This document shows, piece after piece, positions 26,150 through 62,493 of a DNA stretch of 64,000 nt. Where the stretch lies: NCBI RefSeq assembly GCF_006345805.1, contig NC_043010.1, forward strand, positions 30,566,001 to 30,630,000, given 5' to 3'. The DNA is from Octopus sinensis (taxonomy: Eukaryota). The position numbers and the translations under genes were made by a program. Position 1 is the first letter of the stretch; every line of letters starts with the position of its first letter. Below the pieces are notes generated by a model. The model had not been told where the DNA came from, did not search any database, and worked only from the letters and a program-made list of their open reading frames with translations.

Positions 26150-26838
26150 CTGTGTATGAATGTATAGAGAAAAGTGCAAACAAGGTCAGTCGGTCACACA
26201 ACTCTATCTGCTTTTTCCCTAAAAAATATGAATGATACACACATACATACATACATACATACATAATACATATATTGGCAAATAACCAAAATCCCTTTGT
26301 TTCCTCTGCCATAGTTTTGCCTGCTAATGTTTCGTTTACTTTCTGCATCAAATAGTTTACACGATAACCCCATTCGGAAAGCAAATATCGATAATCGATT
26401 AAACTCCTTCTGAAATATCGATTGAACAAAATAGATTAAATGTCACGCCTTGGGAAAATTTGTTGATCTGGAACGTTTCATTCAGTTAGTCTATATCATT
26501 TAATCCGACAATTGGTAACAAACGCTATCTTTTTCGCTTTTTAATAAGTTCCTCGTATTCTCTCATAATTATATGTTCATTTCATAAATGTATATATGTA
26601 TGTATAAATATATACATACATACATATATATATGTGTGTGTGTGTGTGTGTATACATACATAATACATACAAGAGCGGAACACACACATGCACGCTTACG
26701 CACGCGCGCACTCACACACACACTATATATATATATTTATATGTATATACATATATGTATGTATGTATGTACGTATTATGTATGTATGTATGTATGTATG
26801 TATGTATGTATGTATGTATGTATGTATGTATGTATATA

Positions 26839-28082
26839 CAGGGGTTGGGCAAAATAATGGAAGCACCTTAAAATTTCAAACAAATTTATTTTAATAGGAA
26901 TTCTACGAGGTATGGACTCGTACAAAGTTTGAATTGTTTCTAAAGGAATGCTTGTCCATTCTTCAGCTAAAAGAGTCTCCAGTTCTTGTAGTGATGATAG
27001 TAGAATATATCGACTCCTTACTTGTGTTTCTAAAATGCACCATAAATGTTCAATAATATTGAGGTTTGGGGACTGTCGTAGCCAGATAAGATGTTTAATT
27101 TCACTAGAATGTTCCTCGTGCCATACAGTGACAACGTTAGCTGTGTGATTTGGTGCATTATCATCCTGAAAGATTGCATTTCCCTTCAGAAACAGTTCCG
27201 CAACCATAGGATGAGTTTTATCAGATAAAATGCTTAAATAGTCTTGACTATTAATTCTGCCATGAAGGGAAACCATTGGGCTAGCGGATTTCCAAGATAC
27301 AGTCCCACCCCAGATCATCACAGATCCTCCTCAATGTTTAATAGTTGGGAGAAGGCAGTCTGGGTCAAATGCTTTTTTTTTTGTTTTTGGCTGCCTCCAC
27401 ACGTATACTCGGCCGGTGGTCGGAAATAAGGTAAGGGATGACTCGTCCGAGAAAATAACATTCTTCCACTGCTCTAGTCTGTAGGTTTTTTACTCCACTC
27501 TAAACGCTTTGCAGCCTTTGTTTTTGAAAGTAGTGGTTTTCTGATTGCTGTCCTTCCGTGAAATCCGGCTCTGTGCAGCTACTGGCGAATAGTTTTTGTG
27601 GAGACTGAGTTCTCGAGATGGTCATTAGGCTCTGCATTAATTTGGGGAGCTGTACTTTTGTGATCCTTTCTAACAATTCGCGTAAGAGTCCGACGGTCCC
27701 TATCTGAAAGTTTTTGTTTTCTTCCGGAGTTTTGTTTTGACGAGAAGGCTTTTCTCTCTTTCTCAAAGGCTGTCATTACTTTCGAGACATTACTTCTTGT
27801 TACACCAAACATTTCGGCTGTTTTCGTTACGCTAGCGCCTGCCATATGAGCACCAACAATTTGACCTCTTTGAAAGTCCAATAGATCTGTCATTTTAATG
27901 AATTTTAATAACCTTTTTCTGATGACATCTGAAAAGAAACAGCAATTTTAGCAAAACATATTAAGCAACACTAATAATAAATCAAAAAGTATAAAAATAA
28001 GCAAGCTTTTGACGTTTTTATAGATACTTAAAAATTATGATGCTATAATGCTAGGTGTTTCCATTATTTTGTCCAACCCCTG
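26839..28082 (-). mobile_element. Near-complete Tc1 (DD34E-type) transposon, inactive
   Basis: 30-bp TIRs CAGGGGTTGG(G/A)CAAAATAATGGAA(G/A)CACCT; TA on both sides; broken transposase MTDLLDFQRGQIVGAHMAG...FQDDNAPNHTA...SPNLNIIEHLW at 27893-26890. Confidence 0.92.
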
Positions 28083-37990: not shown

Positions 37991-38195
37991 GTTTCAAATT
38001 TTACCACAAAGGCAACAATTTTGGGTGAGGGGATGAGTCGATTACATTACTCCAGTGTTCAACTGGCACTTATTTTATCGACTCCGAAAGAATGAAAGGC
38101 AAAGTCGACTTCGGCAGAATTTGAACTATGAACGTTGTGACGGGCGAAATGCTGCTAAGAGTTTTACTCGGCGTGTTAACAATTCTGCCTTCTCG
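37722..38195 (-). mobile_element. Two type B SINE copies with (ATT)n tails
   Basis: 37722-37920 and 37987-38195, each followed on its own strand by (ATT)n. Confidence 0.8.
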
Positions 38196-38212
38196 ACAAC
38201 TTAATAATAATA

Positions 38213-38420
38213 AGATTCTGGTCAAACATATGGTCTCAGGAGAAACAACACGAAACTGAAACAGAGTGGTTAAAGGCACTCAAGAAGGAGAGTGGGGAGT
38301 ATGAGCAGGAGGATTTGAGAATAACCGAGGAGATGATTAGAGAAATTCCAAACTGGAAAGCGCCTGGCCCAGATGGGTTTCAGGGCTTTGGGTTTAAAAA
38401 CCTGACAGCTCTGCACAGGA
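38213..38420 (+). mobile_element. R4/Dong-clade LINE fragment, RT N-terminal region
   Basis: RFWSNIWSQEKQHETETEWLKALKKE..QEDLRITEEMIREIPNWKAPGPDGFQGF.FKNLTALH; preceded by a short (TAA)n. Confidence 0.75.
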
Positions 38421-38798
38421 GAAATGCTTTTTTGTCGAGTGAGACAAAGCCAAAAATGTCAGTGATTTTGACAAGAGCTATATCTTATGCCATGTCTTCA
38501 CTGACGCTATTATTGGTATCACCGTTGTCGCTACCATTAATTGCTTCTTATTGGGGCGGAGATTTTTTTTGTGCTTTTGCAGTTTGTTGCTATTGTGGAG
38601 ATGTCAGTGGCAATGCACGCTTCTCTACTGCTGGTAATTCTGCTGGATTCTTTGCATGGCATGTCATCATTCCTGCTGCTACTGTTGTTGTTGCTGTCGG
38701 TCGAAAGCTACAATAATATAAGGAAGCTCATTGTGACCAGTGGTGTAATTACAACATCCGATAGTCTGGTCGATACAGTGATATGTATACATATATGT

Positions 38799-41779: not shown

Positions 41780-42470
41780 TATGGATAAGTAGTCCCGGCT
41801 GCGTAGTTAAGAAGCTTGCTTTGCAACCACATTGCTTCGGATTCAGTTCCACCGCACAACTCCTTGAGCAAGTGTCCTCTAATATAGCCCCGGGCAATCT
41901 AATGCCCTTATAAGTCAATTTGGTGTATAGAAAGTATTTTCAAGTCCGTCATACGTGTGTATACTCTTTTACTCTTTTACTTGTTTCAGTCATTTGACTG
42001 CGTCCATGCTGGAGCACCGTCTTTATTCGAGCAAATCGACCCAAGGACTTATTTTTTGTAAGCCTAGTACTTATTCTATCGGTCTCTTTTGCCGAACCGC
42101 TAAGTTACGGGGACGTAAACACACCAGCATCAGTTGTCAAGCGATGTTGGGGGGACAACACAAACACACACACACACACACATATATACATATATACGAC
42201 GGGCTTCTTTCATTTTCAGTCTATCAAATCCACTCACAAGGCTTTGGTCGGCCCAAGGCTACAGTAGAAGACACTTGCCCGAAGTGCCACGCATCTTTCT
42301 GTCTGTATTTGTCCTCTATCACCGCTTAACAACCTCTGTTGGTTTGTTAACGCCTCCTCAAAAATATAGCAATTCGGCAAAAGGAACCGATACAATAAGT
42401 ACCAGATTTTAAAAAGCAACTACCGGTGTCGATTTGTTTGACTAAAACTTTTCAAGGCGATGTCCCAGCA
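41780..42470 (+). mobile_element. Type A SINE (+) interrupted by an antiparallel type A SINE
   Basis: Plus halves 41780-41950 and 42293-42470; minus copy 41960-42292 with truncated head. Confidence 0.75.
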
Positions 42471-42474
42471 GTAA

Positions 42475-42870
42475 AAAAAAATAAAAGACACCCTTAACCC
42501 CACTCTGAATTGCGACAACGCTCCTCTCTTCGAAGACAGTGATACTGAACAACGAAACAACAGGAATCTTGGGCGTAGAATTAATTGGCCATGGGTTTTT
42601 TGGTCTCAAACAAGGCTTAGATTGTAAATACATTTGTGTGGAATGGCGTGACGGGAACAGTCTGATCCCAATTATTGAAAGAGAATGTGAAAAGGTTCAC
42701 TAATTCATTCAGATGAGCGACCCGCTTATAATAATTTAAACGTTATAGGTTATCACCAGCTGCCAGTGTACCATTAACGACATTATGTGGATCCAGTGAC
42801 CGGAGCACACATTCAGGCCATTGAGTGCTCATGGTTGGATGCTAAAACTATGTTTCTGAAAGATAAGGTA
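42475..42870 (+). mobile_element. Merlin/IS1595-like transposase DDE-domain remnant
   Basis: Frameshifted RNLGRRINWPWVFGL..CVEWRDGNSLIPIIERECEKGSLIHSDERPAY.NLNVIGY...YH*RHYVDPVTGAHIQAIECSWLDAK. Confidence 0.8.
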
Positions 42871-42880
42871 GATAACCCAG

Positions 42881-44177
42881 TTTGACACCATTTGACAATT
42901 TTTCCCTCGTCGTACATGATAAACTATAGCTCCACACACCTCGCGGCACATATTGTACCAGTCAGTAATTGTATATTTAGATTTTCCTGTTAGAGTCACT
43001 GCTGTGGTCATGGGTATATCTATGACAAAGAAAAATATTAGTTCTAAAATCTCACTCAGGCTCAGCTTGCAGTTTAATTTGTTGTTTATGTCCGTATAAT
43101 GGGAAAATTGTTTTCCTTTATTAACTGAACATTTAAAATAGATAACTCTGACTATACTGTTAGACAACGTAGTAGACCGCATACTATGCTAGTACCGGGA
43201 CACACTCATTTAATTATTATGCATACATTTGTATAGTTAAGAAGCTTACTTTGCAATCACGTGGTCTCGGGTTCAGTTCTACTGCGCTGCATCATGGGCA
43301 AATAACTTCAACTATAACCTTACACGAACTAATGCTTTGTTAGTGAATATGGTAAACAGAAAGTCTGTGGAAGTCCGTACATGCGCGCGCACACACACAC
43401 GCACGCACACACACAAACACACACGCACATACATGTATGTATACATCCGTACATGCGCGCGCACACACACACGCACGCACACACACAAACACACACGCAC
43501 ATACATACACAAACACACACGCACATACATGTATGTATACATGTATACATACATGTATGTGCGTGTGTGTTTGTGTGTGTGCGTGCCTGTGTGTGTGCGC
43601 GCGCATGTACGGATGTATACATACATGTATGTGCGTGTGTTTGTGTGTGTGCGTGCGTGTTTGTGTGCGCGCGCATGTACGGACCTTCCACAGATTTTCT
43701 GTTTACCATATTCACTAACAAAGCATTAGTTCGTGTAAGGGTATTGTTGAAGTATTTGCCCATGATGCAGCCGACAGTAGAACTGAATCCGAGACCACGT
43801 GATTGCAAAGTAAGCTTAAACTATACAAAATGTATGCATAATAATTAAATGAGTGTGTCCCGGTACTAGCATAGTATGCGGTCTACTACGTTGGTCTAAC
43901 AGTATAGTCAGAGTTCTCTATTTTAAACGTTCAGTTAATAAAGGAAAACCATTTTCAATTATACGGACATAAACAACAAATTAAACTGCAAGCTGAGCCT
44001 GAGTGAGATTTTAGAACTAATATTTTTCTTTGTCATAGATATACCCATGACCACAGCAGTGACTCTAACAGGAAAATCTAAATATACAATTACTGACTGG
44101 TACAATATGTGCCGCGAGGTGTGTGGAGCTATAGTTTATCATGTACGACGAGGGAAAAATTGTCAAATGGTGTCAAA
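42881..44177. repeat. 1.3-kb spacerless palindrome (inverted duplication)
   Basis: Centre between 43541 and 43542; outer 220 bp identical (42881-43100 vs 43958-44177); each arm holds a Merlin N-terminal piece (LSLSEILELIFFFVIDIPMTTAVTLTGKSKYTITDWYNMCREVC), a type A SINE head and microsatellite. Confidence 0.92.
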
Positions 44178-45384
44178 TGGTGTGCCTTTGTGTTTATTGT
44201 CTCCACGGCTTGTCAACTGGTGTTGGTTTAATTCACCTCCCGTAAATTAGCAGTTTGGTGAAAGAGAACGATAGAAAAAGTACCCGACTTCAAAGAAATA
44301 AGTACTGGAGTCGATTTATTCGACTAATACCCTTCAGGACGGTGCCCCAGCATAGCCGCAGTCCACTGATTGAAACAAGTAAAACCAAGGATATTATGAC
44401 TCATACGTAACAGATACGACCGTAGTCACATGCATGTGTGCACCCATATAACGTGTGTCTACAAGTAGACACAGAGCACGGGGATGGCTGTGCGGTTAAG
44501 AAGTTTGCTTTAACTTCGTGGTTTCGAGTTCGATGTCATCGCACGGCACTTTGGTCAAGTGTCTTCCACCATAGCCTAGGACCAACCAAATTTTGTACGT
44601 GAAATTTGGGAGACAGAAGCTGTGTGGGAAGACTGTCGAAGGGACTATTTACAGTTTAGGTGGTAAAGTTAATGTGTCACTCAGTTTAATACCACTAAAT
44701 GGGTTCTCTTGGCAGAATACACATTGTTTCAAAAGCTTGGGTTATTTCTTTGATCCGAAGATAACTTAGTCCCTTTCTGCCACCAATTAAGAGAATCTTG
44801 AGAAAGATCATGGGCACGGCCATGATCGTCGCTTAACGTCCACTTCATCAACATCATTGTTTAATGGCCACTTTTCTATGTGCGTATGGATCTGACGAAA
44901 TTTGTTGAGACGGATTTTTCAACGACCAGACTATAGTGTTTACAAAGGGAACTTCATTCAGGATACAGCCATGCCTGTAAAGGCGTGATCAACTCAACTT
45001 CAGTTTTTCTAACATTGACAGATAGAAGTGTATCAAATAGCATACAACATGAATTCTTGACTTACAGGATGTGTCACAATTGCCAAATAGCAGTTAAGAC
45101 CAGGCACCAGTCGAGAAAGGGAAATAATCTCAAGGTTCAAGAATTTTTACAAAATTGACATGCGTATTGTCTGGTGGTAAGAGGCCATCTTGGACATTTC
45201 TTCCCGGCTCAATAACCGTCCTGAGCACGACAATTGACTGACTTTACCCCCAGCAGCTAAAGGACATAGACTTATACACAAAATGAGTAAAAAAACATTT
45301 ATGGTTCAAGTTTTTCTACTTTAGCTTCATCTGTTATCCCTTCACAATCATATATTTCACACATACACACCCACACACAAAGAA

Positions 45385-46320: not shown

Positions 46321-47228
46321 AATGAGTGTGTTATAAAACTATTCTGCACGTACAATAACAGGTATACCAACAATCCAACATACCTCCATCATCAGCTGCC
46401 CCACGGATATTATTATGGTTTCGACACTGGGCAGTACCATTCAATCTGGCACTAAAATATGTGTTGTTTGGGAATAAACATACCTTAGATATCACCACAT
46501 TCGTTCAATCTTAATTCTAGGAAGGATTAAACGCTAATATTATTAATTAAATTTCAACAAAGAAATAGATTTACCCTATGAAGAAAAACAGTATCATTAA
46601 ATAAATTCATTAAGTAAACCTATAACTAACTCCTAAATTTTCTAAATAGCGACCATATAATATATATATATATATATATGTGCGTGTGTGTGTGTGTATA
46701 GAGAGAGATCAAAAACTCCGGTCGAGAAATTCCTTATACTGATCGGTCAGTTTCAGTTAATTCCATCGCCTTATCAGTTCGATTCGACTGATTCCGGACT
46801 TAATTCTCTGTCAGTTCTTTAACTACAGGATTAGAGCTTTTTAGCTCTTATTTATGATAATGTTGGTGTTCTAATACCTTAATTATATTTAGTGACATTG
46901 ATACGTATATGTGTATGTTTATGTGTGTTTATGTGTGTGTGTGTATGTGTATGTATATATATGTGTGTGTATATGCATGTATATATATATATATTGTTTG
47001 TATGTATGTATGTATGTATGTATGTATGTATGTATGTATGTATGTATGTACGTATGTATGTATGCATGCGTATATGTACACGCCAGAAAGTGAGCGAAGC
47101 AGTGAAGGAAAATATACAAACTTTACACAACATACAAATTATACAAAATATACAAATTTTAATGTTCTGAGAGGTATTTGTACCTGTGAAGGCTTTTCAA
47201 TGCAGTCTGTCGTAGGGGGGAGGTATAG

Positions 47229-47293
<65 letters not shown>

Positions 47294-47702
47294 CGTATAC
47301 ATATGCATAACTAAAATAAATTTGATAAATTTGATGAGGTGAAGTATCAGATCTAACTCTTCAACTGTTCGCCATATTTTATTCTGTCGTTCTTGACGTA
47401 GCATTTCGTGATCTCTCCGATAAATCATACTCTAGTTTCGGAGATTTCCAACGGCAAGTATCCAAGGTGAAAGACAAATCAAAGTTTCGACCTGTGTATA
47501 AGATATTCCTCTCGAAGGTAACTGTGCTCTTCTAACTCGTAGCCCTTTTCTATAAAATGTAGCATTATTGTAAGCAGATTTTTGAAAGCTACGAATGTGA
47601 ATTCCTCAAAACCCCCCACTGTAAACGTGTGCTGTGTTACGCCTTCAAAGTATGTTGGGGCCTCTCTGCCTCTGTGTATGTATGTGTGTGTGTGTGTGTG
47701 TA

Positions 47703-47743
<41 letters not shown>

Positions 47744-49584
47744 GTGTGTGCGTGTGTGTGAAACTTGAAAGATAAAAATGATGAATGAGTAAATAATTAA
47801 TACTAAGGCCGTTATATTTTTAAAGTGTAATTTGACCACTAGGGATGACTACCCTAGTGAACAAAATGGACTCTTAAAAAACGGGGGACAAGTTAGTGAA
47901 AATGCATCGATTAATGATACATGAGATCAAATATCTAGCGACTTCATATACCAAATATGAATAGTTGAGGTGGGGGGAGAGTCGTGTAGGGAATTCTGGA
48001 TTCGTGATTGAGCTGTAGATAATTTTATTCAATTTATTTATTTAAATTGTTCTGTATAATATGCAACACAGCTATTAAAGGCAACGAAATTCGGTTGTGG
48101 ATAATCCTCCTCTCCAGGCAATAACAAAAACAACAACAGTAAATAAAAAAAACGAAAACGCTATAAATAGGGACAAAAAACAACTAATAATAATTTATCA
48201 TAAAGATACCACTCTCTCTCTGTTCCTCTCTTTCTCTCTTCTGAGTCACACTCATCTGTCTCTTTGACACAGACATATAACAATTATAAAAGTCACCAGT
48301 TCAGGATCAATATTGTAAAAAATTATGTAAGCAAATAGCAATTAATTTCACTGACGAACATATGAAAGCGTGTGCGTATGTATATGCGTATGCGTGTGTG
48401 TGTGTGTGTGTGTGTGTTGTGTGTGTGTGTGTGGTGTGTGTGTGTGTGAGTGAGTGAGTGTGTGAAGAAGTGCGTGTAATCATTATTATGTGAATGTATG
48501 TGTGCATGTACATGTGTGTATATTTTCAGAAAAAGAGATGCATGCATGTTTGCATGTATGTATGTATGTATGTATGTATGTATGTATATATGTATGCATG
48601 CATGCATGCATGGATGGATGGATGGATGGATGGATGTGTGAATGTGTACATGCTGAAAAGAAACTTGCCATGTCAGGCTGAAAGTTCGATAACATGGGAT
48701 TTGCATCAAGTGTTTTTAAATGGTATATTATGATTCATTGTACGCGCGTTTGTGTGTGTGTTGTGTGTGTTGTGTGTGTGTGTGTGTGTGTGTGAGTGTG
48801 TGTGTGCATTGTTTCACGTTTATTGACTTATATTTGCAGTGATTAGTCACACATTTTACAGTACATTCTCACATACACGGATACATAGATACACACACAC
48901 ACACATACACAAACATACATACACACGCACACATACACACACGCGCGCGCACAGGCACGCACGCACACATACACACACACATACATGCATATACATACGC
49001 ACACACCTCATCTTTCAAAGCTGATGAACTCGTCGACACAACTCGGAGTATCTTGCTACATAGGTTCTTTCTTGCATATACACACTTTTGTAGATAGACT
49101 TTTGAGAGCAGAAACATTTGCAAACACAGCACCTCAAGTATATATGTGAGCGCTTGCATGTGCATATTATGCATTCGTGCGGTCGCACAGCTACTAGGCA
49201 ACAGAGGGGAGGCGATGCGTCTCAGGCGGCACTTTTCTGGGAGCAGCACTTTTGGGTCAGCTATATAAGACCTGTATAGGCCTGAGGTGGCGGCCGAGGG
49301 CGACAAATTCAAAGGCTGCATCCGGCAGCACATACTCTAGTTACGCCATTGTTTGTGTATTCGTGTGTATATTTATATGTGTGTGTGAGTGTGTGTGTGT
49401 GTGAGCGTGTGTTTGTACGTTTAGGCCATCAGACTGAATGAACGCCTTCTAATCATTCAAGACTACATGATACTCTAAATACATTTGAGTCTAGATAGTG
49501 TCCCATCGAAAGTCGATATACATAAACATGTAATATACCGCACCCGATTCAAGTACATTCTCACATACACAGATACATACCGTT

Positions 49585-49619
<35 letters not shown>

Positions 49620-50721
49620 ACACACACACATAAACACACGCACACATGCACACTTACACACGCGCGCACAGGCACATACGCACACACACATCTCATCTTT
49701 CACGGCTTAGTCAGAGGAAGAAAGGTCACATCAATAATCTTATTGAACGGACTCTCACTCTAATAGAGGAAACAGAAGAAACTGCAAGTCGTTGCTGGCT
49801 GTAATAGGGAGTAATGTATGAAAACAAAATGTCGAATTAAAAACGAAGACCAGCGGAAACTACCGGAGACTTCTGGAGATCCCCTGAGACCAATAAAAAC
49901 TATAGGAGACCATATGAGAACACACGAGACTAACGAAACCACTGGAGGCTATTCAAAACCACAGTATGCTCAATCCGAATGATTGCAACAGAGCTGACTC
50001 CACTAAAGATCGCCAAGTGATGGTGGTAATAGTGGAGGTGATAATGGTGGTAATAAATGGGATGGTATATTAAGTTTATCACCCAACAACAGATGTAAGT
50101 CCATCTGGTAGACGGCTACATAGTTTCATCATCATCACCATCATTAGCAGCAGCAGTATTACTGCCTCAGGTCCAAGGCTGATTACGCGGTTTCCATGGA
50201 CATACGAGTGACCGAGATCACATCATTCTCCTTGAACAGAACGTCAGAACACAATTCAAGAACACAACACAACACACCGCCCGGTACGGGAATCGAAACA
50301 ATTACCTGACGATCTTGAATGTAACACTCTAACCACGTGCCTTCAATACATAGTTTCCATCTCCCCAAATTCTACGAAAAGTCTTTGGAGGTAATGGTAA
50401 AGAGACGTATGTCCAAGATATTGGTGGATACGACAGAGAGATGAGTCACAATGAAATAGACTCTTCTAAGTTTTGGCTGTATATGGTAGCCATTCGGTCA
50501 CGGTATGGGAGTCAATAGAAACAACTTGCCTAAGGCTTGGGTATCCTTTAGTAGAAATACACTTAGGTAAATTTTTGCTCGGTCAATTTTGGTAGAAATA
50601 GGACTACCTGAAGTATGAGTGGCTATGGAAGAGAGGAGACATTTGCTCAGGTCTTGAGAAGATGGCTATAGCAGAGTAGTTGTGTCAGAGAATTGCCCAA
50701 GTATTGAATAGATATCTCTTT

Positions 50722-51072
50722 CTCTTTTTCTCTTTTACTTGTTTCAGTCATTTGACTGCGGCCATGCTGGAGCACCGCCTTTAATCGAGCAACTCGACCC
50801 CGGGACTTATTCTTTCTAAGCCCAGTACTTATTCTATCGGTCTCTTTTGCCGAACCGCTAAGTTACGGGGACGTAAACACACCAGCATCGGTTGTCAAGC
50901 AATGCTAGGGGGATAAACACAGACACACAAACACACACACATACATATATACGACAGGCTTCTTTCAGTTTCCGTCTACCAAATCCACTCACAAGGCATT
51001 GGTCGGCCCGGGGCTATAGCAGAAGACACATGCCCAAGATGCCACGCAGTGGGACTGAACCCAGAACCATGG
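50722..51072 (-). mobile_element. Type A SINE, head truncated
   Basis: Reverse complement closely matches 34775-35150. Confidence 0.9.
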
Positions 51073-51714
51073 TAGAGAAATATTATCAAAGAGCTGGAAG
51101 ATTATGATAGAGAGAGAGAGAGATAGAGAGAGAGAGAGACTTTTCCAATATAGCTCGCCCAGAATCAGATAATTCGTAAGTGAATTTCTCAACCACATAG
51201 CCATACCTTCATTTTGACTTCACCCATTGATCAGATTGCTTGTCTGTCTAGCTGAAATAAATCGTTAGTACCGCCTTACCATATACTTAAGTACAACAAG
51301 ATCTGACCTGTATCCGAGGAACTGAACTGGTTTTAAATATAAACAATTAAATTGGGGAGAAGAGTTGGGGTGGTGAAGTGGGTTTTCCAAACGTTTTAAA
51401 GCATGAAAAGCATAAAACCAGTAAATATATTGTTTATATATGTTTGTATTTATGTGAATGTATGATTATATGTGTCGTTACTGTGTATGTGTATGTATTT
51501 GTATGTGAATATATGTGTGTGTGTGTGTGCATGTGTGTGTATGTAACTATGTGTATGTGTATGTTTGTAATAATATAATAATAACTGGTAAACATATCAA
51601 TAAACAAATTCAGCTGTTGGTTTTGAAATTTTGTCATACACACACACACACACACATACATACATACACATACATACATACATAACATACATACATACAT
51701 AATACATACATACA

Positions 51715-51746
<32 letters not shown>

Positions 51747-52042
51747 CATACATACATACATTCATGCATATATGTATACATATATATTCCAAATATATAT
51801 GTATTCCGAATATATATATATACTCCAATCAATACGAATCGTAAGCTAAGGGAAAGTAACTCAAGTGGGCCATTGGCACAAATTTAGATAAAGCAAGTAG
51901 GTGACGATGTACTGAATAGCATATTATAAAAATTACCAATCGATTGAAACAAGCCTCTTAGTTCGAGAAGGAAACAAAGAAACAATCAAGCGGCAATTAG
52001 TAGTCATTCTTAATAAGAAGGGGGAGATAATTTCAAGAATCT

Positions 52043-52458
52043 TATTTCTTTATTACCCACAAGGGGCTAAACATAGAGAGGACAAACAAGGACAGACAAA
52101 GGGATTAAGTCGATTACATCGACCTCAGTACGTAACTGGTACTTAATTTATCGACCCCGAAAGGATGAAAGGCAAAGTCGACCTCGGCGGAATTTGAACT
52201 CAGAACGTAGCGGCAGACGAAATACCTATTTCTTTACTACCCACAAGGGGCTAAACATAGAGGGGACAAACAAGGACAGACAAACGGATTAAGTCGATTA
52301 CATCGACCCCAGTGCGTAACTGCTACTTAATTTATTGACCCCGAAAGGATGAAAGGCAAAGTCGACCTCGGCGGAATTTGAACTCAGAACGTAACGGCAG
52401 ACGAAATACGGCTACGCATTTCGCCCGGCGTGCTAACGATTCTGCCAGCTCGCCACCT
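52043..52458 (-). mobile_element. Type B SINE dimer
   Basis: Unit 1 52458-52227; unit 2 52226-52043 starts at ggtatttcgtctg, the same internal position as at 25889. Confidence 0.9.
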
Positions 52459-52649
52459 TGCACCTTAAGATTAATCTCACAGGAAACTGATTTTGCAAGT
52501 TTGAGAGGAAATTTATATATATATGTTGTTTTTTTTTTCATTTTATAGTTTGTTTTCGTTAATATAGGTGTAGGCATGGTTGCATGGTTGCATGATTAAG
52601 AAGTTCGCTTTTCGAACAAGTTGTTTCAGATCTCTAGTGATAGCAACGG

Positions 52650-53155
52650 TATTCTTCCATGAAGACCTACATAAAGTGCCTGGAAGAGGTAGTGTTGCCC
52701 TGGGTTAAGAAGGTGGCTGCTGGAAGAACCTGTATCTGGCAACAGGACTCTGCATCATGCCACACAAGCAGGAGAACTCAATCATGGCTGTCAGACAATT
52801 TCTGCGACCATGCCACCCCTAACATCTGGCCACCTAACTCCCCAGACTGCAAACCCCTTGTTTATTATGTGTTGGGCACAGTTGAGCGAGGGACCAACAA
52901 AGCTACATGTAACATCAAAGATGAACTGAAGGCAAGGATTACAGCAGCAATCACCAACTTAAACAAGAGTTGCAGGAGATTCCAAAGTCGTCTGGAGGCG
53001 TGGTTGAAGCCAATGGCGATTTTATTGAATAAATTTACTCTTTAGTATTTCAAGATATTTTTGTGTAATTTTGGTAAATATATCTGTTAAAATGAGATGT
53101 CAGTGTTATTTTCATTTTTGCGTAATTTAGACGACAGTTTATTCGCCATACCCTG
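52650..53155 (+). mobile_element. 5'-truncated Tc1/mariner element (DD37D/maT-like)
   Basis: IWQQDSASCHTSRRTQSWL...IWPPNSPDCKPLVYYV; ends ...attcgccataccctg followed by TA. Confidence 0.8.
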
Positions 53156-53225
<70 letters not shown>

Positions 53226-53303
53226 CATGCATGTATGTATGTATGTATGTATGTATGTATGCATGTATGCATGTATGTATGTATGTATATACATACATAT
53301 ATA

Positions 53304-53334
<31 letters not shown>

Positions 53335-53677
53335 ATGTATGTATGTATGTATGTATGTATATATGTATGTATATAAAAGCACTCAACGCTTTAGCAGGAA
53401 TTACATATATTATTGTTTAAAACAGTTAATTCAGCTCCATGCGATGAACCGGAACGCATTAGGTTTCTGTAAGAAGCCTGTAAAACCTGAAGTCGCATGA
53501 AGCCTAATCAAACTGTTTGTCGGTTTGTCTGCTACTCTGTAAATCTATCTATCTATCTATACTTCTGTCTGACTGTTTGTCTATGTATCTGCCCACATCT
53601 GTGTATTTATATGCATGTATATCATTTGATCTATTTTCCATTGCATACATCCGTACACACACACACACACACACACA

Positions 53678-53726
<49 letters not shown>

Positions 53727-54246
53727 ACACACCATGATTGCATAATTGTATAATTGAACTGATTACATTCTGTTGCGTCTCTATTAATGACTCCATATCA
53801 CATTTTGTTTCGTTACGCCCTATCAAACATACGCATCAATATGACCATATTCTGTCGTACTGAGTTTTATTCTATTGTGGAACAATACGGAAATTTAGCT
53901 ATTCTGGCCCATCGCCGTCACACATCACTTCATTTCGATAAGGTACGGATAGATCATGACATTTATCTCCACTTCACAGCACAAGCTTTTCATGTTAGTT
54001 GCGTCACCCCACATCCCGCATCATTACATTGCATCAAGTTATGTTAGGATATGACACCGTTGCAACACTTTGTCGCTAATTTTCGGCCAGATCACTGGGT
54101 CTCGACCGCTTTTGGTGTTTGTTTGGAAGCGGAAATTTTCTGGCATTGTACTAAATGTTAGAAATCACGATCATGTGGTATTTAGGGACAGTTTTTTCAC
54201 ATTCTGAGATCAACTTTGCCTTTCATCCTCTCGCATGTATATAGAG

Positions 54247-54279
<33 letters not shown>

Positions 54280-54343
54280 CATACATACATACATACATAC
54301 ATACATACATACATACATACATACATACATACATACATACACA

Positions 54344-54646
54344 GTGGAGGTACATGGCCTAGTGGTTTGAGCAACGGACTCGCGGTCGAGGGATCGCAAG
54401 TTCGAATCTCAGACCAAGTGATGTGTGTGTTTTGAGCAAAACACCTAAGCTCCACGCGGCTCCGGCAGAAGGTAATGGCGAACTTCTGCTGACTCTTTCG
54501 CCACAACTTTCTTTCACTCTTTTCTCCTGCATCTTGCAGCTCACCTGCGGTGGACCTGCGTCTCGTTCAGGTGGGAAACCTATACGCCAAGGAAACGGGG
54601 AAACCGGCCCTATGAGCCAGGCGTGGCTCGAGAAGGAACAACAACA
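54344..54646 (+). mobile_element. tRNA-derived SINE with V-domain-like core, inside a (CATA)n array
   Basis: A-box TGGCCTAGTGG, B-box AGTTCGAATC; cctgcggtggacctgcgtctcgttcagg resembles the recalled V-SINE core; (CAA)n tail. Confidence 0.7.
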
Positions 54647-55193
54647 TACATACATACATACATACACACACATACATACATACATACATACATACATACA
54701 TACATACATACATACATACATACATACATACATACATACATACATACATACATACATACATTCATACATATACAGACAGGCAAGCAGGAAGGTAGGCAGA
54801 CAGATAGCCAGACAAGTATGTGTTTGTATGTTCTCTTAAAATGTCTTTACGGAAAACAAGCTGGTCATTAACGTGAAAGATGTCTTTCCTGTTTGAGTCA
54901 GTAAGAGTTTGAAATGTCTATGCGAGTGTGAGTGGACATGCGCGCGCGCATTTGAGTGTATGTACGTGCGTGTTTGACTATGTGTATTTGAGTGTGTGTG
55001 TGTGTAACATATGTGAATATAGATATAACTGCATGCTTGTCATGAGCGCATTCCTCCTGGATGTGTAAATGTAAATGTGGACGAACTCGTGCAATGTACA
55101 CTTGCGCGCGAGCGTGTATGTATGTGTATGTATGTGTGTCAGTGTATTGATTACAAAAGAGATACTTTAACATTTTTTCTTATATTTTTGCAG

Positions 55194-56607
55194 TGGCCGG
55201 GAGATATTGACTCGTTCCAAGAAATCCTTCCCGAACTGAATATTCAGTATCGCAGACAACACTCAAGGACAGACTATAGAACCAACCAACGAATCGGGCA
55301 GACTGCCAGCCAAACAACCAAGCAGCGCCTCCTACTGGCGACAAAAGCAGTATGAATTTATCTATTAACAAACTTTGTCTTCCGCTGTCACGTGAAACAA
55401 ATAAACAGTAAACCGATAAAGGGACATCGTCACTCAGTGGAAATCAACGAGTAACAATACACCAGGAGGGAACTTCCTAGAGGAAACTCACTAGGGAGAC
55501 TCACCAGCAGCCACTAAATTGTTACATCTAAACCTAAGTAAAACAACAAGCAGCATGTAACAAATAAACATGTATCAACCAATCATTGGCAACTAACTTG
55601 AAACAAACACTCTGTGGTGATCATCTGACAGCAGCTAACTTATGGCAATCAATAAATAGCAATCAGAGATAGCAGATCACCAAGCAATATTTGTCTGTGA
55701 ATGTCTATTGTCAGCCATTCTGTGACAGCTTCTGTTCTTGCTAAAATAAAGTCAAACATTTATCAGCAGTTCTAAAATTGTATAAAAATTATCTCAACGT
55801 CCCTCCACATTTCAGTAAATACCGAATCAGTTTCAACCATCCAACCAATATCAGTCATCAACCAGCGACAGCCATCCAATCAGTATCAACCATCCAAACA
55901 TTTTTAAGCTATCCAATCGACTAAAACTGTCCATAAAAGGAACTTTGGGAAACATCTAACCACTGACCAGTATTTGTCATCAAGTGGTATCAACCATCGA
56001 ATAATCATAAATTATCAACTGACCAGACGTTAGCATAACTGACTGTAACTCATACAATTGTGTTTCTTAACGGTCTGTCTCACTGATAACCAACCGTCCA
56101 TAAATCAGCAGTAACCAGTCAACCAACGAGCAGTAAAGAAATTCCGAAACAACAAATCATCCAGCATTGCCCATCCATTCATCCATCTACTGGTTACTGC
56201 TCATCTATCGATTCATTAATCATCCACGTTCCATCTACCAGCAACCTCTTCAAGGTTCATCATTCTTTCGACCAGAAGTACCAAACAGTGGTATTTTAAC
56301 CAATCAAATCACTTAACTATCTTTTGTATCTGTTAATCACCAGTTAGCAGCTGCGATTTTGAATATTCTGCTATAATCCAACCAGCAAATTTAAGCAATT
56401 GGCCAATAGCAAGTTATCATCCAACCATCAAGAAACCATAACTCCAGCAGCTCTTTTATCCATCCGAACCAGCAACCGCTACAATCTAACCAACGGCAAT
56501 ACCAATCGGTAGCATTGTCACCAACCGTCAGCAGTGCTACCACTAAACCATCAGTATACAACCAGCCACCCAATTAACTTGTTAATCGGCAACTACCCAC
56601 CGACATC
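55194..56607 (+). other. Putative long 5' UTR portion of the first coding exon of the K2P gene
   Basis: Strong acceptor ttttttcttatatttttgcag ending at 55193; no microsatellites or SINEs up to the ATG; no ATG in 55704-56607. Confidence 0.5.
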
Positions 56608-57016
56608 ATGGACCAATTGCAGCAAGGAATTCTTGAGAGTCCAAAGCGCTTACATAAAGCCGTCCGAACCTTAATCAATATCATAAAGTCGTGGTTCGGT
56701 CTTCTCATACTTCTGATGATTTATTCGCTGCTCGGTGCCTACGTGTTTATGGAGGTAGAAGGCCCAGCTGAAAGAAAGAGGCGCGCCGGCTTGCTTCGTG
56801 AGCGTCTCTATCTGGGTGATTTGCTCTGGAACCTCACCTTAAATTACGATGGTGACCCGCAGTCCTACAACAACTGGACGCAGTATGTCAAGGAACAATT
56901 GCCTCGCTACGAAGAACGTATATATCAGGCGTACAAGTACTCCATGTCTTCGGATGCTGAGGTTTGGGACTTCTACGGAGCGTTGCTGTACTGCGGTACG
57001 ATTTACACTACAATAG
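56608..57016 (+). CDS. Two-pore-domain K+ channel (K2P, TWiK/TWK-18-like), first coding exon: M1, cap and P1 start
   Basis: ATG in strong context (atcATGg) with in-frame TAA at 56575; M1 WFGLLILLMIYSLLGAYVFMEVEG; pore helix WDFYGALLYCGTIYTTIG; donor GTAGGA at 57017 (phase 1). Confidence 0.93.
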
Positions 57017-57659
57017 GTAGGAGAGTTCCACGTTTGACCTTCCGTACTGATTACATGCTCACCTATTTATCCCAGCACTTCTTTGTCCATGTTCCTTTCG
57101 GGTTCCCTTTCCAAAAAGTTGGGCCACCTACTCATTTAAATGTTTAAAAATAAAAATGTTCCATATCTTATAATAGGTTGTTGTATACCCAGTAGGATGT
57201 ATCGAGGAGACGGCTTTTTTTAAATAGAGGACAGAAAGTACTCATAACTCTTCAAGAGCCTCCGAGCCTGATGGCAAAAAACTTTCTTCAGACCAGGGAC
57301 CTGGCCCAAATTCTTACCACTAAAGTCAACCAAGGGCCATGAAGTGTCGTTTAACAGGGCTAGGTTTTCCATCCAGTATGGCGGCATCCATTTTGTTTTT
57401 ATCTTTTTGGTGTGGTCGAAAATTACGGGTTCGAAAATTAAGTGAAAGAATAACTCAACCAGAGATCAAAACTGTATAGCGAGCTTTGATCCATCCTATT
57501 ATTGTTTCGTGGTTACATAAGATAACATATATTGAAACACGAGAAATTAGTCATCCATTAAACACCCGATATCCATTAATTGTTTCTTTTACAACAGATC
57601 AAACAAAAACAATACGTAAGAGTGGTAGTTTCTTTTTTTTCAATCACTTATCACCTACA

Positions 57660-58230
57660 GCTACTATCATCATCATCATCATGTTCATCATCATTCCCTT
57701 CACCATTATCGCGACCACTATCCTCACCACCACCATCATCACTATCATCATCATCATCATCATCATCATCAACATTGAGATCACGACTATTGTTTATAAT
57801 CATCACCACTACGATCATCACGGTCACTATCAGCACCATGATCCCCTTCCATCACTAGCATCATCGACTACCGAACGACTATTATAACCACCACTACCAC
57901 TACTACCACTACCACCATTACTATTATTGCCAAGACAATCTGTTGTCACTAACACCATTACAATCAACCTCCGAACACCACCGCCATCACCACCACCACT
58001 GCCACCTTCACACCACATCACAAGGAAACATTGCCATCAACTACAATCTTGCACCATTAACGTCTTTATCACTAGTGTTATCTTCATCACCACCATCAAC
58101 AACATCATCAGCATCATCATCATCAACAATAACAACGTCCACATTGCTTACAGCGACATTGTCAACTTTATTGCCATTACCACCACCAATGCCACCAACA
58201 TTAAAACCAATACCAGTGCTATAATCTTTT
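57660..58230. repeat. Degenerate (CAT)n/(CAC)n trinucleotide region in intron
   Basis: Read directly. Confidence 0.85.
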
Positions 58231-58239
58231 AGCACACAT

Positions 58240-58318
<79 letters not shown>

Positions 58319-58516
58319 CATGCACATACACTCAGGCACAGCCATGCACACACACACACACATACACACATGCACGCTGACAAATACATACACACGCACA
58401 GACAACTTACACACATGTACACACACACACCCATACACACTCACACTCAAACACGTGCGTGCATAGGCACACACACACACTCACACACATACACATGCAC
58501 AGACACAGACACACAT

Positions 58517-58562
<46 letters not shown>

Positions 58563-59062
58563 ACACACACACACAAAACACTATGTTTTCAGAGCAATGG
58601 CGTCATCTGTTTCAGTCAATCAATAGAACAACGTGAAGCCAGCTGTACTGTTAGCTTTGAGCTGATAGGTTCGGCTGTAATAGAGGATAACTGAGATCTC
58701 GTAGTTGTTACGTTCTTAAGACGATATTGATCTGCTGTAATAACACAGAGGGAGCTTTTTTTGTTTTACAAGACAGAAATTCTGAACTGAAAGAGAAAGA
58801 GATTTATCAATCTCTAGAGAGCGTTTGTTCACCGTCAGATGACATCCAAAGATGGATTAATTGTCTACAAGTAATAGTAGTGGTGGTGGTGGTGGTGGTG
58901 GTGGTGGTGGTGATGGTGGTGGTAGTAGTAGTAGTAGTAGTATAGTAGTAGTAGTAGTATGAAGGGTTATAGAAAAGCAATTAATGGATGTCCAAATAAA
59001 AAAAAAGTAACAGTTCGGCCAACAGATTTAGAAACAAACAGAAAATAAATTAGGTAGATATA

Positions 59063-59468
59063 GGCGCAGGAGTGGCTGTGTGGTAAGTAGCTTGCTTACC
59101 AACCACATGATTCCGGGTTCAGTCGCATTGCGTGGTACCTTCGGCAAGTGTCTTCTACTGTAGCCTCGGGTCGACCAAAGCCTTGTGAGTGGATTTGGTA
59201 GACGGAAACTGAAAGAAGCCCGTCGTATATATGTATATGTGTGGTGTGTGTGTGTGTGTGTGTTTGTGTGACTGTGTTTGTCCCCCCCCCAACATCGCTT
59301 GTCAACCGATGCTGGTGTGTTTGCGCCCCCGTGACTTAGCGGTTCGGCAAAAGAGACCGATAGAATAAGTACTCGGCTTACAAAGAATAAGTCCTGGGGT
59401 CAATTTGCTCGACTAAAGGCAGTGCTCCAGCATGGCCGCAGTCAAATGACTGAAACAAGTAAAAGAGT
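59063..59468 (+). mobile_element. Full-length type A SINE in the K2P intron
   Basis: Starts ggcgcaggagtggctgtgtggt and ends gaaacaagtaaaagagta. Confidence 0.92.
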
Positions 59469-59985
59469 ATAGAAGAGCGATAACAGGAGAAAACAAACTA
59501 GAAAAGGTTTGACTGATGAACGAGGGGATATTTTAGACACATTGATAAAAGGGGAGTCGAAAAGATGGCAGGTTGTGTTTGTGTTTGTGTGTGTGTGTAT
59601 GTGTGTGCGATTTTGTCTCAAACAAGGCTTCGTGCCGCTGTAACGTACAGAAGGCTTACAAATTCAAAAGATGTCGATTGACAGAAGTTTGAAGGATTGA
59701 ATATCATAGGCCAGGGGAAAACAAGACGATGGTGATCAGTTCCACAGAGGAATGAAAGTATTAGAATAAAAGGACATATGAATAACAGGAACTTCAACTG
59801 AGAAACATCTATGAATATTGATTTTGGCATAGGGACAGCAATTTCATTGATCGAAAAGTGCTCAGTGTTAATAAAAATTATTTTCGAAGGGGACAATGGA
59901 GAAAACTCCCAGATTTCAGTTCACCAAAAATGGAAAGAACATATGTTGGGTAGAGTGAAGTTGATCTTGGTAGCTAAGATAGCAG

Positions 59986-60026
59986 CTTCAGATATGTTTC
60001 GGTCTCATTAGACCTCCTCAGTGCAG
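59986..60026 (-). ncRNA. Minimal type I hammerhead ribozyme, antisense to the K2P intron
   Basis: Minus strand: ctgca-CTGAGGA-GGTCT-aatg-AGACC-GAAA-CATA-TC-tgaag; stem I 4 of 5 pairs; stem III one change from palindromic ACATGT. Upstream on the same strand is a possible PLE C-terminus (ICLEYKFI...NEI). Confidence 0.78.
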
Positions 60027-60384
60027 TATAGTCAACATACAAATACCAGGACCTCAGAACGACCAAAAGATATATTTGTGTGTGTGTGTGTGTGTGTGTG
60101 AAAATAATTCACAGATAAAAGACACTATAGTCACGGCTAGAACTAGATATCTGAAGGCCGTTTGTATCGACACTCTAACACTATGTTTCTCAAAGTAGTT
60201 TCCGAGAAACCAGAGTTGATAAATTTCGTTCCATGAAATAAGGTGTCTTATAATAAATTCAATAAATTTATATTCTAAACATATAGTATTTATACTTTCG
60301 GAATAAGTCATTATATACATAACTTATCACTTAAAATAGATTTTTATTAAATTAAGTCAATGATAGTATATATATATATATATA

Positions 60385-61168
60385 CGATGTGTGATCAATA
60401 AGTATCCGGACTGTTGCTATAGTAACGAAGCTAAAGCACACAAAGTAAAGCCGCTTGGCACAGGTTGACCTTGAACTCTGTTGTACATGCGCACTAAGTT
60501 TTAACATTCTTGCTCACTTCCGCTGTTTACAGCAGTGCTTGGAAGGAAGGTGTGTAGCATGTCATCGTCCTATTGACCATGACAGAGTGTGTTGTCATGG
60601 CGATACCAGCTCAGAGGCTTACGCAAAGTTGCAGAAAGTGTATGGAGAGGAGTGTATGAGTCGGACATAAGTGTACGAGTGGTTGAGACGTTTCCAAGAT
60701 GGCCGAAAAAAAGGTCGATATCGTCGAACGTTCTGGGAGGCCTACAAGCAGCAGAACTGAAAAAAACATTGCAGATATGCGTGCAGCTGTGAGAGGAAAT
60801 TGTCGAATCACCATCCGTGAGTTATCAGCAGATGTGTTAATTAGTTACGGTTCGGTTCAGTTCAGTCCAGTCCATTATCACGGAAGATTTCGGTCTGCCA
60901 AGTTTGTGCCAAAACTGCTTTCAGCTAATCAAAAAGACACTCGGGTTTCAGTTGCACAAGATCTCCTTGATTGTGTCGATAGCGATAAAAGCTTTTTGAA
61001 AACTTGGCGTTGGCCCCTGATCAGGGATCGCCAAGCTTTTGACAAAATTTGATGCAGATTCTCTGCTCCACTTTCTCTGTGATAGTCAATGCGACGATCA
61101 CACGCTACACACCTACCTGCTTTAGGTTCTTTACTATGGCAACAGTCCAGATACTTATTGATCAGACC

Positions 61169-61171
<3 letters not shown>
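60385..61171 (+). mobile_element. Internally deleted mariner element
   Basis: ~40-bp imperfect TIRs (..tgatcaataagtatc.ggactgttgc.atagtaa); AYAKLQKVYGEECMSRT, ERSGRPTSSRTEKNI, RITIRELSADVLISYGSVQ and SAKFVPKLLS. Confidence 0.85.
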
Positions 61172-61215
<44 letters not shown>

Positions 61216-61232
61216 GTGTGTGTGCGTGCGTG

Positions 61233-61393
61233 TTTATTCTTTTACTTGTTTCAGTTATTTGACTGCAACCATGCTAGAACATCGCCTTGAAAGGTTTTAG
61301 TCGAACAAATCGGACTTATAGCCTAGTAAACACACCAATACCGGTTGTCAAACGGTGATGGAGGACAAACAATGACACACAAACACACACACA

Positions 61394-61434
<41 letters not shown>

Positions 61435-61770
61435 TCACACACACATGATTGAAGAAAATGGAGTCAACAATAAGGTTGGACAGTTATTTTTTTGTTCATT
61501 CCAATTTCTTCAATTTTATATTCAGACACGACGAATACACAAACATAAAACTGGAAGTATATAATAATGCTACCGGATAGTATTGGGTAATTCTACCCAC
61601 TTCCTAACGGAATCTACCATAGCTATATATATATACACCAATTCTACTTACAAGGCTTTGGTCGGCCCGGAGTTATAGTGGAAGACACTTGCCCAAGGTA
61701 CCACGCTGTGGGACTCAACCAGAAACCATTGGTTGGGAAATAAGCTTCTTACCACACAGTCACGCCTGCG
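61233..61770 (-). mobile_element. Fragmented type A SINE
   Basis: 3' part 61233-61385 (internally deleted) and 5' part 61647-61770. Confidence 0.75.
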
Positions 61771-61856
61771 ATATACAGTATATATATCCTTTTATTCTTT
61801 TACTTATTTCAGTAATTTGACTGCGGCCATGCTGGAGCACCACCTAAACGTATGAG

Positions 61857-61964
61857 ATGCTTACAGCACCTAGACTTCCCCAGCGGTCACCCATCTAAGT
61901 ACTCATTAGGCTCGATTTTGTTTATCTTCGGTGATCGGACGAGAACCGGCATTCAACGTGATAT
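61857..61964 (-). pseudogene. 5S rRNA pseudogene lacking about the first 10 nt
   Basis: Minus strand atatcacgttgaatgccggttctcgtccgatcaccgaagataaacaaaatcgagcctaatgagtacttagatgggtgaccgctggggaagtctaggtgctgtaagcat is collinear with invertebrate 5S rRNA; substitutions in box A and box C. Confidence 0.88.
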
Positions 61965-62105
61965 ATATATATATATATATAATCTATGCATATATACATA
62001 ACATATAGGTACATGCCTACATATATATATATATTATATAGGCATATATACATACATATATGTACATGCCTACATATATTATATATATATATATATATAT
62101 GCATA

Positions 62106-62360: not shown

Positions 62361-62458
62361 TTTTTTTATATATATATTTTTTATATATATGTATATATAT
62401 ATATATGTATATATATATGTATATATTATATACATACATACATACATACATACATACA

Positions 62459-62493
<35 letters not shown>

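Follow-up and report, generated by a model that had tools for sequence, protein, structure and literature searches.

A 1.3-kb spacerless palindrome interrupting a SINE in the Octopus sinensis genome, probably a recent inverted duplication

Introduction

Foldback inversions form via single-stranded DNA hairpins (PMC7467729), and large human inverted duplications form by fold-back as well (PMC3907307). In these yeast and human rearrangements the inverted copy adjoins the break, the turn-around is a short self-complementary sequence able to form a hairpin and little or no spacer is left between the arms; they are usually terminal, or range in size from tens of kb up to Mb, and their resolution passes through dicentrics. 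On a much smaller scale, templated inverted insertions arise at breaks through foldback (PMC11724301): local sequence is reverse-copied by folding back of a 3' end and rejoined across the break, between the original flanks, the inserts being mostly of ~5–34 bp. Palindromic junctions are also produced by fork template switching at short inverted repeats, as in ODIRA and in DUP-TRP/INV-DUP rearrangements (PMC10766183, PMC10766186, PMC4352052). A further comparison is technical in nature: palindromic or fold-back chimeric long reads and error-prone base calling at inverted duplications (PMC7229812, for nanopore data) can likewise leave a palindrome without spacer in a long-read assembly, one of its arms seeming less accurate than the other.

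Here we describe a palindrome of 1.3 kb in a 64-kb stretch of the Octopus sinensis genome (64,000 nucleotides, CM016872.1:30,566,001-30,630,000, hereafter the window, to which all positions refer). Like foldback inversions, it has an inverted copy adjoining the putative break, a hairpin-prone turn-around and no spacer. On the other hand, only ~640 nt were copied and, unlike in foldback inversions, the chromosome continues at the original position, which implies a second switch or a join back. With templated inverted insertions it shares the reverse copying of local sequence and the return to the original flanks, although it is ~20-fold longer and its far end lies at another breakpoint. The features of the fold-back and templated-insertion class that were tested are present at the locus, except a clear microhomology at the junction. 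Template switching at short inverted repeats and palindromic junctions recall ODIRA, but an ODIRA event, or an inverted triplication, was discarded because it needs three copies with the middle one inverted, and the arm sequence is present just twice in the window. Unlike a chimeric read, finally, the palindrome returns to the original template, and the assembly was built from PacBio and not from nanopore data.

Results

Geometry of the palindrome

An exact symmetry scan placed the centre at 43541/43542, with no spacer and 35 perfect pairs per side, in agreement with the preliminary description of this DNA; the next-best centres reached 7. The palindrome spans positions 42881–44177 (CM016872.1:30,608,881-30,610,177), pairing being lost at 42880 (g) versus 44178 (t), and it is internal to a contig, the window containing no N. 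Its two halves are a left arm of 661 nt (42881–43541, plus strand), considered below as the template copy, and a right arm of 636 nt (43542–44177, plus strand), considered as the inserted inverted copy. The core is a perfect 70-bp palindrome (43507–43576), predicted to fold as a hairpin, inside a self-complementary TACA/TGTA microsatellite. When folded as DNA, the central 300 nt gave -155.5 kcal/mol, compared with -80.7 +/- 4.2 for shuffled sequences (z = -17.7), and no second long spacerless palindrome was found in the 64-kb window; on these two grounds a chance origin was set aside. Matches to Rfam microRNA families at the centre (mir-5014, mir-3149, mir-1277, mir-297 and mir-466) were all below the gathering scores and reflect only the low-complexity TG/CA/TA hairpin. 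A search for tRNAs gave none.

The alignment of the two arms yielded 620 identities over 666 columns, corresponding to 96.6% once a single 24-nt indel adjoining the centre is left out. No difference was observed over the outer 220 bp (42881–43100 versus 43958–44177), which had already been recognised as identical, and all 19 difference events fall between 43101 and the centre. Each arm also contains two copies of a ~72-bp tandem unit, CCGTACATG-CGCGCG-(CA)n-TACATGTATGTATACAT, in line with the mirrored duplication noticed before and with the period of 70 and 2.0 copies returned by TRF at 43541–43683.

Content of the arms and the interrupted SINE

The arms carry, in mirror order, sequence of three unrelated classes, namely the 5' part of a transposase gene, the head of a SINE and a TA/CA microsatellite. 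In the left arm these correspond to the transposase 5' part in reverse complement (42881–43195, minus strand), a 32-bp linker (43196–43227), the head of a SINE here termed SINE-P (43228–43383, plus strand, delimited by alignment with the SINE copies of the window) and a microsatellite block (43373–43541, plus strand) made of two ~72-bp units, the inner one with 24 extra nt. In the right arm, the mirror of the microsatellite block (43542–43675, plus strand) is followed by the SINE head in reverse complement (43676–43831, mirroring 43228–43383) and by the linker with the transposase 5' part, this time in gene orientation (43832–44177, plus strand).

The 3' half of SINE-P, or tail, starts immediately after the right arm (44178–44392, plus strand), belongs to an old subfamily and carries a AATACCCTTCA insertion. 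Head and tail share markers of this same subfamily in the alignment of window SINE copies and, as previously proposed, the left-arm head joined to the sequence from 44178 corresponds to a whole SINE, as seen from its end-to-end alignment with seven other copies in the window. A possible target-site duplication of SINE-P is represented by ATTATTATGCATAC at 43213 and ATATTATGACTCATAC at 44391. The collinearity of the left-arm head with the tail at 44178 identifies the left arm as the resident template, and the right one as the insert. Moreover, the arms are 96.6–100% identical to each other, compared with 70–77% between SINE-P and the other SINE copies of the window and 79–84% for the closest transposon paralogs, so that the arms are copies of each other and not independent insertions. 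At the sequence level, the right arm is well supported as an inverted copy of the adjacent DNA, placed between the microsatellite and the tail of SINE-P.

The turn-around takes place at the self-complementary TACA/TGTA run, and after the insert the original contiguity of the SINE is restored. At the return junction (44164–44183, plus strand) the arm ends with ...GTCAAATGGTGTCAAA at 44177 and the tail starts with TGGTGTGCCTTTG at 44178. No clear microhomology is seen here, at most 0–3 bp (TGG after a 1-bp gap), and a 10-bp tandem of CAAATGGTGT was created (44164–44173 and 44174–44183). This small repeat, which had been seen at the junction before, has one further copy on the minus strand (42885–42894), giving 3 matches versus 0.27 expected by chance.

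The microsatellite itself does not have the orientation of a regular SINE of this kind. In both arms the head is followed by the order CG-(CA)n-TA-rich, while the canonical SINE order is TA-rich-(GT)n; this reversal indicates that the centre has a multi-step history, with more than one inversion step.

Another old SINE of the same subfamily, SINE-A, lies nearby (41795–42484, plus strand), as established by self-BLAST, which matched 43234–43378 to 41804–41949 at 70.5%, and by multiple alignment. Between its head (~41795–41963) and its tail (42292–42484), a younger SINE, truncated at its 5' end and lying on the minus strand (~41964–42291), is nested within the microsatellite and interrupts it. 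Within the same 3 kb, two members of one subfamily are thus disrupted at the microsatellite, SINE-A by a nested insertion.

The transposase fossil and the left outer breakpoint

The DNA to the left of the palindrome contains a remnant of a dead ISXO2/IS1595-type (Merlin-like) transposase gene, here called fragment b (42505–42861, plus strand), which covers the C-terminal part and has frameshifts and one stop. It matches the Pfam family PF12762 DDE_Tnp_IS1595 (E = 1.1e-8; 35.7 bits versus a cut-off of 27) and, as DNA, is 83.8% identical to an O. vulgaris paralog (L001, positions 3082–3439) and 79.2% identical to a second paralog (L002). At the protein level the fossil showed 61% identity over 96% of the query to a 290-aa protein (P0001), and the closest named matches came from O. 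bimaculoides and O. vulgaris. L001 was also considered as a possible orthologous locus, and was rejected as its flanks have only repeats in common with the window.

Fragment b is followed by an old inverted-repeat remnant of 18–19 bp, GATAAGGTAGATAACCCAG (42862–42880, plus strand), which is cut off at 42880 and matches L001 3486–3504 (AATAAGGTAGATAACTCTG). In L001, where the gene is truncated at the same point, this repeat follows as well, and there it extends into an inverted copy of the element's own 5' region.

The transposase 5' part of the left arm reads on the minus strand as an ORF of 117 aa, with matches to family members of O. bimaculoides. In the protein alignment, full-length relatives read ...RRGK-MVGTxDNPIQIDEARFAGRRKYNRGR-xLNGDNAPL..., the arm copy ends with ...RRGKNCQMVSN and fragment b begins with LNCDNAPLF; the ~80 bp expected between the two (L001 3002–3081) are missing from the locus. 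A search on either side of the structure for this ~80-bp middle part and for the rest of the 5' end gave no signal above that of shuffled sequences, and no remainder of the C-terminal part was visible in the translations. The arm copies are ~83% identical to L001, that is, as close to it as fragment b, which argues that they derive from this element's own 5' end, once located upstream of b. At present, the orientation is switched at the end of the left arm, with b on the plus strand and the adjoining 5' part on the minus strand. Since the DNA that separates the inverted head from the tail includes ~350 bp of transposase fossil, which is not SINE sequence, a LINE-mediated twin-priming inversion was rejected as well.

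The end of the left arm therefore coincides, to within 0–4 bp, with the rearrangement junction of the transposase fossil. The probability that a later fold-back stopped at the fossil breakpoint by chance is roughly 1%, and the coincidence points to an event more complex than a single fold-back. A common origin of the three novel junctions (42880/42881, 43541/43542 and 44177/44178) in one event with several switches or breaks is more likely; alternatively, position 42881 may have been a physical DNA end. The proposal made in the preliminary description, that is, a snap-back at the microsatellite followed by return to the template, can accordingly be retained only in part: the anatomy fits, but one snap-back and one return would not be sufficient to place the left junction at the fossil breakpoint.

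Asymmetry of the differences between the arms

Scattered indels had been reported in the inner arms. They are indeed present, but the divergence turned out to be asymmetric. The differences were polarised by using eight SINE copies as outgroups for the SINE head, the paralogs L001 and L002 together with O. bimaculoides family proteins for the transposon part, and the sister 72-bp units for the microsatellite. Thirteen of the 19 events resulted derived in the right arm, one in the left arm and five were ambiguous, so that 13/14 polarisable differences lie on the same side (13:1, binomial p ~0.002). The variants specific to the right arm are at positions 43958, 43950, 43916, 43894, 43819, 43774, 43772, 43754, 43745, 43685, 43661, 43641 and 43587. 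All polarisable indels are derived in the right arm, and the sole event derived in the left arm is a CpG-to-TpG change at 43131.

The right-arm changes consist of length shifts in homopolymers or tandem repeats and of substitutions copying the neighbouring base, and are thus of slippage type. They are limited to the inner ~430 bp, where the difference between the arms is ~3–4%. Indels are about as frequent as substitutions between the arms, compared with roughly 1:4 between O. sinensis and O. vulgaris in the same window. A second indel-rich patch emerged from the comparison of the window with O. vulgaris, in unique sequence beside a microsatellite (62,080–62,290).

The 13:1 excess of slippage-type changes indicates that the right arm is a low-fidelity copy, and not one of two arms that aged symmetrically; as discussed below, such a copy may be due either to unpolished PacBio consensus or to error-prone repair synthesis. 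This asymmetry and the coincidence of the left outer junction with the fossil breakpoint are what the present analysis adds to the preliminary description.

Genomic setting and comparison with other octopuses

The palindrome lies in non-coding DNA, 12.4 kb upstream of a two-pore potassium-channel gene, whose exons in the window (56608–57018 and from 62715, plus strand) have a translation 100% identical to O. vulgaris TWiK-18-like. The split between O. sinensis and O. vulgaris is dated at ~2.5 My ago (PMC10700109). The orthologous stretch of O. vulgaris (L054) is collinear with the window, with 2.4% substitutions and 0.58% short indels, the part that it covers beginning at position 46185 and lying 2 kb away from the palindrome. 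Two other comparison loci were discarded: one (L055, CM016872.1:30612608-30649143) proved to be the window itself (46608–64000, 100% identity over 17,393 bp with no gaps), and the O. bimaculoides locus L056 corresponds to a different exon and has only repeats in common.

Sixteen ORF translations, taken from unique DNA up to 9 kb away and concatenated into one query, gave no match to an orthologous locus, and P0040, looked up by way of the channel gene, had no entry on record. Exact-product look-ups of the ORFs across 42880/42881 and 44177/44178, and of ten more ORFs in the arms, junctions and flanks, returned no match on record and were uninformative. An 18-mer specific for the arms gave 51 chance matches in metagenomes, none of them homologous by BLAST.

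Discussion

We hold, with moderate confidence, that the palindrome is a real and recent inverted duplication, a structural scar without function, and that the differences between its arms are mostly technical. The sequence itself shows the anatomy, in which direction the copy was made, the asymmetric distribution of the differences and the match of the arm end with the fossil breakpoint, while mechanism, timing and existence of the structure in the animal are inferred from these. Before the event, the locus would have consisted of an old SINE (head, internal TA/CA-GT microsatellite and tail) adjoining the 5' part of a decayed ISXO2/IS1595-type transposon. A break or a stalled fork in the self-complementary, hairpin-prone microsatellite may then have allowed the 3' end to fold back, and ~640–660 nt to the left, comprising microsatellite, SINE head and transposon fossil, would have been copied in reverse, before synthesis or joining re-entered the starting molecule at the GT-run that opens the SINE tail. 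Rather than one clean snap-back, the rearrangement probably involved several switches or breaks, with the copy ending at the fossil breakpoint, the adjacent 376-bp transposase fragment being flipped or misplaced and ~80 bp being lost. Most of the inner-arm differences would then be residual PacBio consensus errors, in the arm beyond the reach of short-read polishing; low-fidelity repair synthesis is the alternative source.

Several paths of one or two steps from the pre-event state were considered, including an in-place inversion of the 376 bp, a circular inverted dimer, a deletion from an initially larger palindrome and the expansion of an inverted repeat by gene conversion; none was uniquely supported without an outgroup. 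A simple fold-back leaves two observations unexplained, i.e., the end of the arm at the fossil breakpoint and the inverted orientation of the microsatellite.

The caution expressed in the preliminary description, that an assembly artefact should be taken into account, is justified. According to two papers (PMC13282606, PMC10700109), assembly GCA_006345805.1 was obtained from PacBio and Hi-C data (Li et al. 2020), and is of the CLR era. The animal might therefore carry an ordinary SINE, the right arm having been generated from chimeric or hairpin reads, by gap filling or by mis-consensus, and then partly polished. This would account for an inner right arm holding 13/14 polarisable changes that resemble long-read consensus errors, and for outer 220 bp that are perfect where paired short reads anchor in the unique flank. 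The indel-rich patch at 62,080–62,290 is a further sign of local consensus problems next to a microsatellite, and inverted repeats are known, in the nanopore case, to degrade long-read base calling (PMC7229812). The architecture of the locus argues otherwise. A fold-back read, or a read with a missed adapter, would run on into the reverse complement of fragment b and SINE-A, instead of breaking off after 636 nt and picking up precisely where the interrupted SINE has its tail. Assemblers make no joins on a 10-bp repeat, and the structure is contig-internal, with no N, with arms of 636–661 nt and with no equal in 64 kb. Furthermore, one difference is derived in the left arm, and a real palindrome would be just as likely to have one arm of poor consensus. 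We thus regard an artefact of sequencing or assembly as a possibility to be kept in mind, but an unlikely one.

The way in which palindromes are polished may explain the asymmetry also when the structure is real. Short reads from both arms map to the arm that is initially less erroneous, and the other arm stays unpolished, with the exception of its outer ~200 bp, which are still correctable by read pairs anchored in the unique flank. The clean outer 220 bp and the error-rich inner right arm are exactly the pattern predicted by such asymmetric polishing. These observations show that at least part of the inner right arm is poorly resolved in the assembly.

The right-arm changes could instead be real traces of slippage-prone repair synthesis (MMBIR or theta-type) over the first ~430 nt, replaced by an accurate polymerase in the last 220 nt. 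In this respect, the polarity is towards the new arm (binomial p ~0.002), the changes look like products of slippage or dislocation, a fold-back would have synthesised the error-rich part first, and the complexity of the rearrangement, with at least three novel junctions, is that of multi-switch replicative repair. Nevertheless, ~3–4% of errors over 430 nt is, to our knowledge, too high for any known repair polymerase, by one to two orders of magnitude, and a technical explanation is at hand with a local precedent in the 62,080–62,290 patch. Because of the rate, we favour consensus errors as the cause of the low-fidelity right arm, and consider error-prone synthesis distinctly improbable.

The SINE might also have received a mobile element of foldback or MITE-like type whose terminal inverted repeats are ~650 bp long, or two independent insertions facing each other; both may be dismissed as very improbable. 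Long spacerless inverted arms do resemble Foldback elements, and in the ISXO2-type paralog L001 the 5' end is likewise repeated, in inverted orientation, downstream of the gene. But the arms are made of the locus's own flank and of the head of the interrupted SINE itself, the non-SINE part of the arms had no second copy either in the window or among the fetched paralogs, where similarity did not exceed the 83% of the family level, the flanks (GATAACCCAG and TGGTGTGCCT) form no target-site duplication, and separate SINE copies are at most 77% identical.

Returning to a real inverted duplication, the CpG-to-TpG change at 43131 in the left arm suggests that the two arms have been separate DNA for some time. 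With a calibration of 2.4% pairwise divergence per 2.5 My, the age of the structure would be ~0.3 My if only this change is real, and ~1.6 My if all of the ~10 substitutions are. As both values are below the 2.5-My split, the palindrome should be absent from O. vulgaris, where an uninterrupted SINE is predicted.

If real, the locus represents a clean germline fold-back insertion of middle size (~650 nt), in which donor, turn-around and return point are all readable owing to the fact that the event interrupted a recognisable SINE. Its length sits between the 5–34 bp of templated inversions at experimental breaks and the kb-to-Mb range of cytogenetic inverted duplications. Should the palindrome, or the differences between its arms, be artefactual, palindromes in CLR-era assemblies may pair a polished with an error-laden arm, mimicking divergence. 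Either way, no gene-level consequence is evident, and the main value of the locus is that of a well-delimited example, together with a caution on the asymmetric polishing of palindromes.

A broader idea, which we put forward as a speculation with little chance of being correct, is that the internal quasi-palindromic microsatellites of octopus SINEs are germline fold-back hotspots, making de novo loci with long perfect hairpins that would be potential dsRNA/ADAR substrates or seeds of new foldback-type elements; if so, the 13:1 excess would be the preserved footprint of very low-fidelity repair synthesis. SINEs make up ~11.6% of the O. vulgaris genome (PMC13282606). The palindrome described here, if real, would mean that microsatellites inside SINEs are able to give rise to palindromes in a cephalopod genome rich in repeats.

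Microsatellites of the palindrome and of the neighbouring SINE

The microsatellite block of the palindrome (nt 43373–43690) lies, in both arms, in the reverse of the canonical SINE order, its units running from CCGTACATG at the head end through CGCGCG and (CA)n to a TA-rich run. The arrangement CCGTACATG-CGCGCG-CATGTACGG would make a perfect small palindrome on its own. An extra 24-nt repeat (nt 43483–43506) was found in the inner left unit and is absent from the other three.

The SINE that the palindrome interrupts belongs to an old subfamily, another member of which was detected 400 bp to the left of the palindrome (SINE-A, nt 41795–42484). The internal microsatellite of SINE-A is likewise broken up, by a nested, 5'-truncated younger SINE inserted in the opposite orientation (nt ~41964–42291), thus making the microsatellites of two adjacent SINEs both sites of rearrangement.

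Other features of the window

Two inverted-repeat pairs, one of 163 nt (91% identity, 2.8 kb apart; nt 15613–15775 and 18597–18759) and one of 105 nt (95% identity, 1.6 kb apart; nt 23291–23395 and 24952–25056), look like the terminal inverted repeats of DNA transposons. Two ORFs were labelled from their translations alone. One (nt 26776–27321, reverse strand; 181 aa) resembles a Tc1/mariner transposase over the latter's C-terminal half; the other (nt 38180–38713, forward strand; 178 aa) contains a reverse-transcriptase-like stretch (…IPNWKAPGPDGF…).

A two-pore-domain (TWiK/K2P) potassium-channel gene is represented by two exons on the forward strand (nt 56608–57018 and 62715–63140), the first of them 12.4 kb from the palindrome, which lies on its upstream side. 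Through these exons the window could be assigned to O. sinensis CM016872.1:30,566,001-30,630,000. The encoded protein shows 100% identity with the O. vulgaris 'TWiK 18-like' protein and 87% identity with that of Argonauta hians.

Around ten single-base indels, mostly in homopolymers, are clustered at nt 62080–62290 when compared with O. vulgaris, in unique sequence adjoining a TA microsatellite. Short indels between the two species average 2.7 per 430 bp, with a maximum of 17, and the appearance of this patch is that of a long-read consensus left unpolished in either the O. sinensis or the O. vulgaris assembly.

Related ISXO2-type elements

An intact ISXO2-type transposase ORF of 290 aa, sharing 79% DNA identity with the fossil copy in the octopus, was found in a metagenome collection record (JGI sample 3300001463, contig JGI24021J15306_10020501), which suggests that cephalopod or other molluscan DNA is present in that sample.

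In a paralogous ISXO2-type element of O. vulgaris (L001, nt 2700–3530 of the locus; OX597826.1), the transposase C-terminus is cut at the identical point to the window copy, and downstream of this truncation lies an inverted copy of the element's own 5' region, ~75% identical (AATAAGGTAGATAACTCTG...GACCGCATACTATAG). The common truncation point, together with the inverted 5' copy, indicates that an old inverted terminal duplication was already present in this subfamily when its copies separated.
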